Assembly (NCBI GenBank): GCA_020137815.1
Contig: CM035356.1
Coordinates: 3,906,001-3,970,000 of the forward strand
Direction of reading: 5' to 3'
DNA from: Hormiphora californensis
Lineage: Eukaryota > Animalia > Ctenophora
DNA length: 64,000 nt
In this document: positions 19,846 through 23,500 of the stretch, piece after piece
How the letters are laid out: each line of letters begins with the position of its first letter
How positions within the stretch are numbered: position 1 is the first letter of the stretch
Notes under the pieces: generated by a model
Seen by the model: the letters and a program-made list of their open reading frames with translations, nothing else
What the model was told of the DNA's origin: nothing
Database searches by the model: none
Position numbers and translations under genes: made by a program

Positions 19846-20572
19846 ATGAACAACGATCACGACTGTTTGGGTTGTAAGGTAGTCCGACGAACCTTCGCCT
19901 CTGCCCTTGCCCTCTACTGTCTTTTCAGTAGTAAGGTTTCTCCCTCCTTCGCCTCGACTCAACCCTACCCACGATCCACCAGGATCACTTTCGGGATTGT
20001 TGGTGAGTGCATCTCTCTAGTGTACGAAGATCTGTGCGTGTAGTATAGTAGTTGTAAGTTGAATTGCCGAACCCTCACAGAGCAGTGAGGCACACAGTCT
20101 ATAGAAGGTGAGCAGGTTAATGTCTAGATCTAGTCTGGATAGGCGCCTGGTGCGGAGTGAGACAAAGTTTTCTGACCGTCACTGGAATGTTTTTGTGAGA
20201 CTGAACCCCGAATTTTTCCGGTTCCTACCAACGTGCGGTATCTCTAATAGAGATACCGCACGTAGGAACCGGAAAAATAATAAGATTGTTTAATGTTTAT
20301 CTATGGAAAGTAATATTGTTAAATAGCTCATAAAATAGCCCCTGTAATTATGCCCGGGGAGAGAAAAGGACTCAGCGCCATATAATATATAGTTACCACA
20401 TACCCGGGTTGGTATGGAGGTTTGCTAAGCGTACCCCATGGTCTAGTAAGAAACAAACAAACAAACAAACAAACAAACCCCTCTACCAGGTGCTGTAGCG
20501 TGTTCACTGTTGACAGCGGACCTAGCCGGGTATGTTCCAGTTAATAGAGCTGAGAAACAACGTGGGAATTAG
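19846..20572 (+). CDS. DMAC1: DMAC1/TMEM261-like small membrane protein (complex I assembly factor-like), 79 aa, 2 exons
   Basis: Exon 19846-20002 (DCLGCK CxxC motif plus hydrophobic segment, GTGAGT donor) spliced in phase 1 to 20490-20572 (GAVACSLLTADLAG...RGN*). CxxC, two hydrophobic segments and AD-x-x-G match the family layout. Confidence 0.6.
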
Positions 20573-23500
20573 ACCATCCCTCTTCAAGGTATATACAAGG
20601 TGGCCCATAAATTATGATAGCGGGGGACGAGCTGTACCTCCGAAACGGTGATAGTTGAGCAAAAACAAACTACGGGAACATGCTGGAACAATTCCTGGAC
20701 GGCTTTTTGCAAATTATGAAATTTTTATTCAAAAGTTCATTTTTCATTCATGAACTTTCTACACGTTCATTAATGAATTAAGAACTCTAATTTACCGAGA
20801 GTGAGGAATTTTGTTTGGGTTGAATTTATCTTTCCAATGAGCACCATGAAAATCAAATTGAAGCACCAGGTCACATGGCAGTTGAGAAAATGCACATGCA
20901 TGATTTTGGCTCTTCCTGCGACTTTCAATCGGCTGTATCACGGCTACCTTTTGTTCAATCTTTTTAAAAATTTGGGTGAACATCGGATAATCAAAGATCT
21001 TTCCTCACAAGAAAAATCAAGGTCAAAACTCAAAGTTCATTTTCAAGTGTTGGTAGTTCATTCCACTCATTCAGGAACCAACATCCCTAAAGTGATGAAA
21101 AGTGATGGGTTTTATTTGGCCCATACCCTGCAATGATAGAGAGCTGTAAAAATACTTTTCCAGGCTAGTTAGTGGGTGTCCATGTGATCATGATGATATC
21201 TGACACCTTTTCTGAGCCATAATTGAGGGATTTTCTCAAATGCAAGCATGTGATTTGAGTTTTTGCGATTGGTATCGTGCAGCAATGTTGAGAGATCTCA
21301 TAGCACCTCAAAAATGATGATTAGTTCAATGAAATGAGTTGATTTATGATCGGAAATGATCGTTTAGTTCATTTTGACGTCTGTTTTTATCTTTTCTATC
21401 ATAAATCAACTCATTTCATTGAACTAATCATCATTTTTGAGGTGCTATGAGATCTCTTACCCATTGTTGCACGATACCAATCGCAAAAACTCAAATCACA
21501 TGCTTGCAATTTGAGAAAATCCCTCAATTATGGCTCAGAAAAGGTGTCAGATATCATCATGATCACATGGACACCCACTAACTAGCCTGGAAAAGTATTT
21601 TTACAGCTCTCTATCATTGCAGGGTATGGGCCAAATAAAACCCATCACTTTTCATCACTTTAGGGATGTTGGTTCCTGAATGAGTGGAATGAACTACCAA
21701 CACTTGAAAATGAACTTTGAGTTTTGACCTTGATTTTTCTTGTGAGGAAAGATCTTTGATTATCCGATGTTCACCCAAATTTTTAAAAAGATTGAACAAA
21801 AGGTAGCCGTGATACAGCCGATTGAAAGTCGCAGGAAGAGCCAGAATCATGCATGTGCATTTTCTCAACTGCCATGTGACCTGGTGCTTCAATTTGATTT
21901 TCATGGTGCTCATTGGAAAGATAAATTCAACCCAAACAAAATTCCTCACTCTCGGTAAATTAGAGTTCTTAATTCATTAATGAACGTGTAGAAAGTTCAT
22001 GAATGAAAAATGAACTTTTGAATAAAAATTTCATAATTTGCAAAAAGCCGTCCAGGAATTGTTCCAGCATGTTCCCGTAGTTTGTTTTTGCTCAACTATC
22101 ACCGTTTCGGAGGTGCAGCTCGTCCCCCGCTATCATAATTTATGGGCCACCTTGTATGTGTTACTGGGTAACTAAGGAAGAACTTGAGAAGATTTATTGA
22201 ATTTTCTGGGGGGATTTTCTGAATTGAGAATATGCAAAGTGAAAGGAGGTTTTATAAAAAGCCGGACTGGCCACCAATGCGAGTAGAATCTCACTGTAAA
22301 GGGCCCGCAGAAACTAAAAATAGAATTATTACAATAGTTGCAAGAAGTGATATTCACTAGTTTTAACTATCCAACCCCCCAGGTTGAGCAAAGTAAGGCT
22401 ATAAAAGAGGTGCTGAACACGAAGTTAGCCAACAAGGTACTCTACAAGCACGGTCTATGTATTGTTCTACACGATATACTGCACATCGGAGACAGCTTCT
22501 CTTTTCCTGGTGACGCAGGTTAGTGCTGCAGGAACCGACCGAAACAAGTAAACAACCAATCAGAACTCGTTATTTAGGTCACGTGACTCGTTTTCAGCCA
22601 ATCAGGACCAGTATTTCCTGATTCGGTCGGTTCGTGGTTAGTGGACCCCTCTTCCTTCTCTGTTTAGAGAGAAGGAGAGTGGTCGTATGGCTCTTTGAGG
22701 GTAGATCAAGTTAGTGCAGACCATCTTCCTTTTCCTATTCTAGGGAGACAATTAGGATCTAGGCTTTTTTGCGTTTATCAACCTCTTGGGAATTGTTTCT
22801 GTTAATGAGTAGGATAGCTAACTAAAGAGTCGTCTTAATAAGCTTGGTGAACAGTTATAGTCAGCACTACTACTGCTCTCTGTATTAATCTTACTCTGTA
22901 CGTGAAAACTAGTTAATCGATATTGGTATGCCGATATCTATTCTCCCACTTAGTACGCAGCAAATTACTTTGTCTGTACTGTTCTTTTCAAATGGTGGAA
23001 AACTAGAGTACTAGATATTGAGTGTACTGCATTTGGAATTCGCAATACTTTGCCTTCTCTCGCTCTCACCCATTTCTCTTTTGCCGTACCAGAATAAAGG
23101 ATTGTCACAACTTATAGGAAACTGCGGTACTGCTTTCTGCTTTGTATGCGCTTCTCTCCCTACTGCGTTAGATCATGTGTTAAACTGGGTACTGTGCAAT
23201 GACAATAACACATACTGATTGCGTTCTCTCTCACACACGTTTATCATCCCCCATACAATGCGTGGTGACATGTGAAGTCACGATAGCTCCCATTGGATCT
23301 GTCACGTAGCGTAGTGGGTGGTATTAATTCGTTGTACGCAGTTTCTAACTTGGTACGTCACATATCATTTTGGGAGAGCAATACTGTATTGGGCTTTTCA
23401 CATGTAGGGGAGCCACAGGTAATATGGGATACCTAACAACTTTTGGCCATAATTTTTTTTCAGATGACAATAAAGTCACGCCGTCTTCATAGGTGTGTCT

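Follow-up and report, generated by a model that had tools for sequence, protein, structure and literature searches.

Animal genes with two cistrons in which a conserved upstream open reading frame (ORF) for a microprotein precedes the main coding sequence include MOCS2A/MOCS2B with their overlapping frames, the MIEF1 upstream ORF, and SNURF-SNRPN. In MOCS2, alternative 5′ exons influence which of the overlapping frames is read. The products of several such upstream ORFs are small mitochondrial proteins. The locus described here lies in a stretch of 64,000 nucleotides of the ctenophore Hormiphora californensis, which was analyzed as a whole and is referred to as the window. It resembles these genes in that one transcript appears to carry a short conserved ORF followed by a longer, likewise conserved one. 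It differs in the pair concerned, a DMAC1/Dmo2-like protein and the RNA polymerase III subunit POLR3H, both putatively translated, and in its host, a ctenophore in which most mRNAs undergo trans-splicing, a process normally expected to separate neighboring cistrons.

In Schistosoma mansoni, 43% of the spliced leader acceptor sites are also cis acceptors, and the two types of splicing compete without internal promoters (PMC5832876). Intronic internal promoters feed alternative leader acceptors in Caenorhabditis elegans (reviewed in PMC5832876). At least 56% of the H. californensis Iso-Seq reads carry the leader (PMC8527503). The locus shares with the S. mansoni competition (PMC5832876) and with leader-resolved operons the ubiquity of the leader, the tight clustering of genes on the same strand, and the possibility, in principle, of either use of the acceptor. 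In contrast to known leader cases, which trim a 5′ end or split non-overlapping cistrons, the small ORF considered here runs 83 nt past the acceptor, so that cis- and trans-spliced mRNAs would be mutually exclusive products.

Members of the DMAC1/Dmo2 family are small proteins in which an N-terminally located Cx2C motif precedes two hydrophobic segments (bioRxiv 10.1101/2023.06.12.544600). The product of the small ORF has in common with DMAC1 (TMEM261) and yeast Dmo2 (PF15055) the N-terminal Cx2C and, putatively, the two hydrophobic segments, and the nearest language-model clusters are a lead to the same family. It differs from them in the lack of an HMM match of its separately searched parts and in its first hydrophobic stretch, which is short and not glycine-rich.

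Organization of the locus

The small ORF follows the gene of an MCM-binding protein (Table 1), whose stop codon is located 194 nt 5′ of the small-ORF ATG (19846–19848). From this ATG, the frame is open up to the GTGAGT donor at 20003–20008, and the part encoded by exon 1 comprises 157 nt, that is, 52 codons and one nucleotide (phase 1). Without splicing, a stop codon is reached at 20041–20043, resulting in 65 amino acids. The acceptor of the next exon reads cctctaccAG with the AG at 20488–20489, and the exon starts at 20490. Past the splice, the small-ORF frame continues as G-AVACSLLTADLAGYVPVNRAEKQRGN and ends with TAG at 20570–20572, giving a total of 79 codons. A second ATG at 20532 (MFQLIELRNNVGIRPSLFK) opens a different frame, which runs to a donor GT at 20589; both frames overlap in 41 nt (20532–20572). 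The coordinates given in the preliminary description, including the extent of the overlap, all proved exact when the sequence was read again. Genome searches revealed a single copy of small-ORF exon 1.

Table 1. Features of the small-ORF/POLR3H locus and its upstream neighbor (positions within the window)
Feature	Positions	Strand	Evidence
MCM-binding protein gene, single exon, 587 aa	17889..19652	+	Pfam MCM_bind 8.5e-145, profile positions 26-577/577
Two candidate 3′ splice acceptors, tctAG/caAG/	19829..19834	+	sequence only
Small-ORF exon 1, codons 1-52 and first base of codon 53	19846..20002	+	sequence, relative P0001, contigs
GT-AG intron, 487 nt, GTGAGT ... CAG, phase 1	20003..20489	+	sequence; zero contig depth 20096-20423
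Shared exon, 99 nt	20490..20588	+	sequence; contig 20488-20586; single copy in genome
Small-ORF last 27 codons (split codon included) and TAG	20490..20572	+	sequence
POLR3H coding exon 1, 19 codons, MFQLIELRNNVGIRPSLFK	20532..20588	+	sequence; continuity with later exons
POLR3H coding exon 2	22383..22518	+	SHS2_Rpb7-N 5.2e-8; acceptor cccccAG, donor GTTAGT
POLR3H coding exon 3	26695..26787	+	frame continuity, splice sites
POLR3H coding exon 4	29470..29629	+	RNA_pol_Rbc25 3e-15; splice sites
POLR3H coding exon 5, stop TAA 30024-30026	29849..30026	+	RNA_pol_Rbc25 9.7e-6; sequence

The two candidate acceptors upstream of the small ORF contain the sole AG dinucleotides within approximately 90 nt 5′ of the ATG at 19846, are preceded by a pyrimidine-rich run, and could receive a spliced leader ahead of the small ORF. 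If they are used, the mRNA leader would contain an ATG at 19839 in another frame, which opens 12 codons up to a stop at 19875–19877. The intron between exon 1 and the shared exon harbors a single-copy hairpin at about 20212–20278 (−48.9 kcal/mol, z −11) and a (CAAA)n tract ahead of the acceptor. Rfam searches over the region gave sub-threshold hairpin matches and nothing else.

Judged by its sequence, the gene starting at 20532 is POLR3H (RPC25) and a real gene. The model comprises five coding exons with 207 codons and is present in a single genomic copy. The second coding exon encodes the SHS2 Rpb7-like domain (PF03876, 33.3 bits with a cut-off of 24.8). The Rpc25-specific OB domain (PF08292) is recognized in exons 4 (57 bits) and 5 (26.4 bits), and the two matches jointly span positions 18–64 and 89–121 of the 121 profile positions. 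Because of the domains in the downstream exons and the clean GT-AG boundaries, the ATG at 20532 is regarded as the true POLR3H start, as had been proposed before. A foldback transposon of 1565 nt (20593–22157) with 649-nt arms of 100% complementarity is located in POLR3H intron 1, where it begins 4 nt past the donor; at least 40 palindromic copies of it are found in the genome.

Splicing into the shared exon and proposed expression of the two frames

Poly(A) metatranscriptome contigs of four runs were used as RNA data. The contigs covering the locus stem from two runs (X1 and X2) of one environmental study; they are not reads from the sequenced animal, are of low depth, and do not retain minor isoforms. 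Contigs also cover the gene of the MCM-binding protein. Exon 1 and the shared exon are transcribed and the intron is absent: two contigs match exon 1 at 19851–19968 and 19860–20000 without differences, a third one covers the shared exon, and the contig depth is zero in 20096–20423 in all four runs. The depth is also zero in 20588–20751.

The cis junction 20002/20490, which had been postulated from the splice sites, gains indirect support from the geometry and depth of these contigs. Record 12 of X2 (175 nt) sits on 19860–20000, which leaves 34 letters, and these exactly explain the depth of X2 in the bin 20424–20587 (3.3 × 34 / 164 = 0.68). Record 3 of X1 (161 nt) sits on 20488–20586 and has 62 preceding letters. 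Placed at 19939–20000, these letters share exactly 30 = k−1 positions with record 2 of X1 (end at 19968), as fits neighboring contigs of a 31-mer assembly graph. The piece ends 20000/20488 are in accordance with the canonical junction 20002/20490 in a strain carrying T20001A (GTT to GTA, synonymous). We infer that the junction is used in cis and that the transcript is unbranched at the acceptor. In the X1 bin 19932–20095, about 60 depth-letters are left unexplained. In the contig placement, a repeat at 20441–20485 was skipped, and the row for one joint next to it was left out.

The four runs contained no contig that joins POLR3H exon 2 to the shared exon, and 22383–22391 was uncovered in all of them. 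The small-ORF stop and the next donor are 16 nt apart, too little for the small ORF to have a 3′ end of its own; together with the zero depth in 20588–20751, this suggests that the shared exon continues into POLR3H exon 2.

The explanation that we prefer, and to which we assign an about even chance, is one mature mRNA with two overlapping ORFs, from which POLR3H is translated via leaky scanning or reinitiation. A single transcription unit would yield this mRNA carrying both the small ORF and POLR3H: exon 1, starting at or before 19846 and extending to 20002, would be cis-spliced to 20490–20588 and then to the four remaining POLR3H exons. The first ORF, with its 79 codons, would encode a small, conserved membrane protein whose N-terminal part contains a CxxC, and the second, starting in the other frame 41 nt before the end of the first, would encode POLR3H (RPC25). 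The context of the first AUG is weak (tctAUGa versus ggtAUGu for POLR3H), and ribosomes might pass it by scanning and reach the POLR3H AUG. Alternatively, translation of the out-of-frame ORF of 12 codons at 19839, provided that it is within the leader, might be followed by reinitiation. No other ATG is found in 19849–20002 or 20490–20531. The lack of an ATG between the acceptor and 20532, pointed out in the preliminary description, is real, but the absence of ATGs from the two stretches is not unusual: dinucleotide shuffles contained 0.72 ATG on average, and 44% of them had none. ATG depletion was hence not significant and was discarded as a sign of leaky scanning. It also counts against a plain dicistronic mRNA that only one relative of the small ORF was found and that, with at least 56% of the Iso-Seq reads carrying the leader, leader addition somewhere in the unit is likely. 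If both frames are translated, the locus would be, to our knowledge, the first ctenophore gene described as dicistronic with overlapping frames, in which a core Pol III subunit is the partner of a microprotein resembling mitochondrial assembly factors. A mostly trans-splicing lineage would then still keep true polycistronic mature mRNAs.

As an unlikely alternative, but the best surviving one, the acceptor 20489/20490 might be used both in cis (with the donor at 20003) and in trans (with the 44-nt spliced leader), and the balance would set the ratio of the two proteins. The trans form would be a monocistronic POLR3H mRNA with its first AUG at 20532. The published H. californensis leader is present about 390 times in the genome, its usage in Iso-Seq data is high (at least 56%, PMC8527503), and the sharing of acceptors has a precedent in S. 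mansoni (43% of sites, PMC5832876). Furthermore, the genes form a tight cluster on the same strand, the stretch between 20490 and 20532 is free of ATG, and, since AG forms the end of the leader, a contig with the leader joined to the exon would likewise align from 20488. For this last reason, record 3 of X1 was considered as a leader joined to the exon. This was rejected because its 62 upstream letters exceed the 30 leader letters that a one-gene 31-mer contig can keep, and because they fit exon 1 exactly, with the k−1 overlap described above. In both runs covering the acceptor, the contig passes from exon 1 unbranched and the bin depth is fully accounted for. The genome contains no retrocopy of POLR3H or the shared exon that starts with the leader, and an acceptor is normally committed to cis-splicing by its upstream donor. 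A leader joined to 20490 was not found among the low-depth contigs of the four runs, nor was the leader sequence found within the window. The more specific version, in which the cis-spliced mRNA is mainly read for the DMAC1/Dmo2-like protein, the leader-spliced mRNA for POLR3H only, and the arrangement is conserved across ctenophores, is somewhat less likely still. If it applied, the type of splicing chosen would determine how much of a respiratory chain assembly factor is made relative to a Pol III subunit. The proposal that cis- versus trans-splicing at this acceptor decides which protein is made is so far unsupported, in view of the unbranched contigs and the missing leader-headed retrocopies. 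The bicistronic mRNA, which had been mentioned as an alternative to it, agrees better with the evidence. How cis- and trans-splicing share an acceptor can readily be tested at this locus.

The small ORF and its possible relation to DMAC1/Dmo2

The small ORF looks like a real coding sequence rather than a chance ORF, because a significant relative exists at the protein level. P0001, the better of two matches at E values up to 0.001 among 1.84 billion representatives, aligns to the exon 1 part with 48% identity over 46 amino acids without gaps (library-wide E value 2.4e-5). The second match, P0002, is a repeat protein and was rejected as a relative. P0001 keeps DCLxCK..RRT, and its alignment ends with ...TG at the same place as exon 1. 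Conserved are the CxxC, the basic cluster, and the PSF/STR.TF motifs. The CxxC is located at residues 7–10 of the small protein, followed by K/RR and a hydrophobic stretch; it thus lies ahead of the first membrane segment as C7-L-G-C10 here and as C-L-E-C in P0001, with both cysteines invariant. This layout had been predicted for the small protein and is present. The contigs revealed a C20527T polymorphism in the shared exon, which is synonymous in the small-ORF frame (GCC to GCT); T20001A is the second of the two polymorphisms seen, both of which are synonymous in this frame. P0001 was the sole result when exon 1 or the alignment of the two sequences was used in word-indexed homolog searches. 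A search of PDB sequences gave no match, nor did scans of JGI metagenomes for peptide patterns or for a 31-nt piece of the shared exon.

Exon 1 might instead be a 5′ untranslated exon of POLR3H, in which the 79-codon frame at most throttles POLR3H and yields no functional protein. In line with this, Pfam is silent, the relative is a lone one in huge databases, open runs of 52 codons are not uncommon by chance, the first hydrophobic stretch, with its 14 residues, is short, and record 2 of X1 begins at 19851, with seven unlike letters before, so that the ATG at 19846 is outside the aligned part. However, untranslated sequence is unlikely to be alignable as protein at a divergence of 48% amino acid identity, with conserved motifs and an E value that holds after correction for 1.84e9 sequences. 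The synonymous nature of both polymorphisms, the 22-residue hydrophobic segment completed by the splice, and the language-model neighbors, which form one coherent family, also speak against it, and we consider an untranslated exon 1 improbable. Even less credit is given to a promoter located within the intron of 487 nt or around its hairpin that drives separate POLR3H transcripts, with two promoters and a shared exon, for which there is the C. elegans precedent (PMC5832876) and the unusual single-copy hairpin, but the intron is short and contig depth over 20096–20423 is zero in the four runs.

The designation of the small protein as DMAC1-like, also part of the preliminary description, is pointed to by the language model and not by the Pfam profile. 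Inspection suggested two candidate membrane segments in the 79-codon product, TFASALALYCLFSS, which is short with 14 residues, and a 22-residue segment across the splice (ITFGIV-G-AVACSLLTADLAGYV), which is finished by codons of the shared exon; about 60–110 amino acids and two membrane segments are taken as the size criterion for DMAC1/Dmo2. PF15055 (DMAC1_Dmo2; curated cut-off 27 bits) did not match exon 1, the second-exon part, the unspliced ORF, or P0001, each searched separately, at E values up to 10. A six-frame scan of the H. californensis genome with this profile gave three noise matches elsewhere with at most 19.2 bits, one of which resembles the last exon of a transporter; all three were rejected. 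The assignment to DMAC1/Dmo2 is plausible, and the small protein is most likely a ctenophore DMAC1/Dmo2-like protein, predicted to reside in the mitochondrial inner membrane, where it may act in complex I or COX assembly. If so, a very divergent candidate missed by profile searches has been recovered. In the ESM Atlas protein language model, in which scores below 0.9 serve as leads and not as a test, the top matches of exon 1 (0.87, 0.86, and 0.86) were all PF15055 clusters, as were those of P0001 residues 114–166 (three times 0.86), and the neighbors of both orthologs had 170–180 shared features.

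Overlapping reading frames at the POLR3H start

Direct reading of the sequence reproduced exactly all coordinates of the preliminary description (ATGs, donor, acceptor, stops and overlap). The frame of the small DMAC1-like ORF, which begins with ATG 19846, continues past the splice into the shared exon (20490–20588) and ends with TAG at 20570–20572 after 79 codons. Without splicing, the stop is at 20041–20043. Within the shared exon, ATG 20532 starts MFQLIELRNNVGIRPSLFK in a frame other than that of the small ORF, and this frame is open to the donor GT at 20589. The dual-coding overlap of the small ORF and POLR3H measures 41 nt, and the small-ORF stop lies 16 nt upstream of the next donor. 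Such an overlap costs little; in it, the highly conserved POLR3H N-terminus is paired with the hydrophilic tail of the small protein (PVNRAEKQRGN).

Positions of gene features and of RNA contigs in the window. X1 and X2 are two poly(A) metatranscriptome runs of one study; records are numbered Logan contigs.
Feature	Position	Strand	Remark
Small-ORF exon 1	19846 to GTGAGT donor at 20003	+	157 nt, phase 1; read from sequence
Acceptor AG of shared exon	20488–20489	+	read from sequence
POLR3H coding exons	20532–20588, 22383–22518, 26695–26787, 29470–29629, 29849–30026	+	207 codons, clean GT-AG sites
X1 record 2	19851–19968		exon 1; no differences
X2 record 12	19860–20000		exon 1; no differences
X1 record 3	20488–20586		shared exon

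The assignment of POLR3H was borne out by the five-exon model with its clean splice sites, single exons of which match Pfam SHS2_Rpb7-N (5e-8) and RNA_pol_Rbc25 (3e-15 and 1e-5). Both POLR3H and exon 1 of the small ORF are single copy in the genome. The upstream neighbor is the single-exon gene MCMBP (8.5e-145), which ends 194 nt 5' of ATG 19846. The alignment of an MCMBP contig (X1 record 1, 19429–19644) ends at 19644, six bases 5' of the stop, and 17 unlike letters follow; possible explanations are a difference between strains, an adaptor, or splicing close to where the MCMBP ORF ends.

Transcription, coding and identity of the small ORF

Logan contigs of four environmental runs were aligned to the window. 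The contigs match at 97–100% and a MITE of the genome is extremely deep in them, indicating that H. californensis or a very close relative was present in the samples. Contig depth is zero over the intron at 20096–20423 and over 20588–22391. The 20002|20490 cis splice, for which the preliminary description had proposed a check, very probably exists, as judged by contig geometry and depth arithmetic in two runs of a single study. The joint itself is not printed; the alignment skipped the repeat 20441–20485, and one joint row beside such repeats was dropped. Record 12 carries 34 unlisted letters past 20000, and the X2 depth in bin 20424–20587 (0.68) equals 3.3 × 34 / 164; the same arithmetic also gives both exon 1 bins of this record (1.45 and 1.39). 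Record 3 carries 62 letters 5' of 20488. Placed on 19939–20000, they overlap record 2 by exactly 30 letters, which is the k − 1 expected of neighboring contigs in a 31-mer graph. The piece ends 20000|20488 are explained by the canonical junction if the sampled strain carries T20001A, because the AG of the resulting RNA (...ATTGTAG|GTGCTG...) aligns equally to the acceptor AG. The inferred T20001A is synonymous in the small ORF (GTT to GTA, Val), as is C20527T (GCC to GCT, Ala), the sole other difference seen, which lies upstream of the POLR3H ATG.

Record 3 was also considered as spliced leader plus exon, since the leader too ends in AG. This was rejected: a gene-specific 31-mer contig would hold at most 30 leader letters instead of 62, and both record 12 and the exact match of the 62 letters to exon 1 speak against it as well. 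Approximately 60 depth-letters in the X1 bin 19932–20095 are unexplained and may belong to a low-depth allelic contig. Seven unlike letters precede the start of record 2, so that ATG 19846 lies outside the contig cover, and none of the contigs in the four runs joins 20588 to 22383 or covers the start of POLR3H exon 2.

Exon 1 (52 amino acids) was scored against 1.84 billion representatives, with two matches at E ≤ 0.001. Of these, P0002 was ruled out as a relative, being a repeat protein. The other (P0001), a 166-amino-acid ORF on a 1641-bp ENA metagenome contig, aligns without gaps over its last 50 residues to residues 4–49 of the small ORF (48% identity, 65% positives, library-wide E 2.4e-5). 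Both CxxC cysteines, the following K and RR-T, and the motifs Y-C, P-S-F, and P-x-S-T-R-x-T-F are common to the two sequences, and P0001 has a Met four residues ahead of the first Cys. Its C-terminus (...FTG) coincides exactly with the end of exon 1 (...IVG), which would fit a phase-1 intron common to both, the stop lying a short way into the intron. Since untranslated sequence is not expected to stay protein-alignable at such divergence, we read exon 1 as coding. Conservation of the small ORF, on which the preliminary description depended, was thus found for exon 1; homologue searches, metagenome pattern scans and a PDB sequence search retrieved no relatives beyond P0001.

The DMAC1 label is plausible. 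Hallmarks of DMAC1/Dmo2 are a Cx2C facing the intermembrane space, two membrane segments, and a small size (bioRxiv 10.1101/2023.06.12.544600). The small ORF likewise has the Cx2C. Its first hydrophobic segment (TFASALALYCLFSS) is short and the second (ITFGIV-G-AVACSLLTADLAGYV) is complete only through the splice. The ESM Atlas clusters nearest to exon 1 and to residues 114–166 of P0001 are all PF15055, with 170–180 shared features and scores of 0.86–0.87, which by the tool's calibration are a lead, not proof. On the other side, the PF15055 profile (now DMAC1_Dmo2), applied up to E 10 and to spliced products exon by exon, matched neither exon 1 nor the unspliced ORF nor P0001, and scanning the whole genome with it in six frames gave only noise elsewhere. 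On balance, membership in the DMAC1_Dmo2 family is somewhat favored, and the small ORF is the sole candidate found in the genome.

Proposed expression of the two frames

Because the small-ORF stop is so close to the next donor and no contig enters the intron behind that donor, any mRNA with exon 1 can end only after further splicing. Such an mRNA should therefore include the entire POLR3H frame behind the small ORF and would be dicistronic; the chances that this is the main form are about even. Leaky scanning would be the simplest route to the POLR3H AUG. The AUG context is poor for the small ORF (tctAUGa) and better for POLR3H (ggtAUGu). No AUG lies between the two, which is unremarkable (44% of shuffles likewise). 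A 12-codon out-of-frame ORF (19839–19877) has its ATG 7 nt 5' of the small-ORF ATG and overlaps it. Speculatively, a leader added at AG 19829–30 or 19833–34 would leave this ORF in the mRNA, where it could take ribosomes past the first AUG to reinitiate at 20532.

The locus resembles those animal dicistronic genes that have a conserved microprotein ORF upstream of the main ORF, sometimes overlapping it. MOCS2 comes nearest, both in its overlapping frames and in the effect of alternative 5' exons. A literature search that paired DMAC1 with "bicistronic" yielded no relevant work. The arrangement itself is known; in Ctenophora and for this gene pair it has, as far as could be found, no precedent.

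According to the preliminary description, cis- versus spliced-leader trans-splicing at acceptor 20490 might choose which of the two proteins is made. The idea is legitimate, because in Schistosoma the two kinds of splicing are known to compete for a single acceptor (PMC5832876) and the leader is found on at least 56% of H. californensis Iso-Seq reads (PMC8527503). This leader (44 nt, ending in TTTGAG; PMC8527503) has approximately 390 genome copies at ≤3 mismatches, many of them exact, and none in the window. However, the idea found no support here. The contigs show no branch at the acceptor: two bridging contigs explain all depth there and neither breaks. A second upstream partner, for example the leader, is not visible at a depth of 3–5, at which contigs drop minor forms. 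Leader-headed retrocopies of POLR3H or the shared exon were not found in the genome either, and the switch is considered unlikely. Still less probable, given the protein alignment with P0001, is that exon 1 is a non-coding leader exon with a regulatory upstream ORF. An intronic promoter is the least probable explanation.

Repeats and a hairpin beside the splice sites

A near-perfect, single-copy RNA hairpin (20212–20278; −48.9 kcal/mol, z −11) is located mid-intron between exon 1 and the shared exon and might influence acceptor use; Rfam gave only sub-threshold miRNA-like matches. Only 4 nt 3' of the shared-exon donor, a foldback element of 1565 nt starts (20593–22157), with outer arms of 649 nt (100% complementary) and inner arms at 96–97%. 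Genome-wide, its family numbers at least 40 palindromic copies (91–99% identity). In the pre-mRNA, the element would form a perfect stem of approximately 780 bp directly past this donor. A MITE (22524–22645, approximately 115 nt) is located 5 nt past the donor of POLR3H exon 2 and has terminal inverted repeats and internal CCAATCAG / CACGTGAC motifs. At first look, the genome contained 268 candidates, and the 40 scored were 94–98% identical. Metatranscriptome contigs with unlike flanks are stacked on it, with depths that range from hundreds into the thousands.

Antisense within POLR3H intron 3, a 289-amino-acid ORF (27744–28613, minus strand) encodes tandem HQ(S/N)..QEDI repeats and a Cys-rich tail; it matched no Pfam family. 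POLR3H exon 4 ends in approximately 20 nt that, together with its GTGAGT donor (29612–29640), recur approximately 50 nt downstream in the intron (29666–29690); judged by sequence, this creates a putative decoy or alternative donor. This repeat resembles the exon-end-plus-donor minisatellite at 31374–32083.
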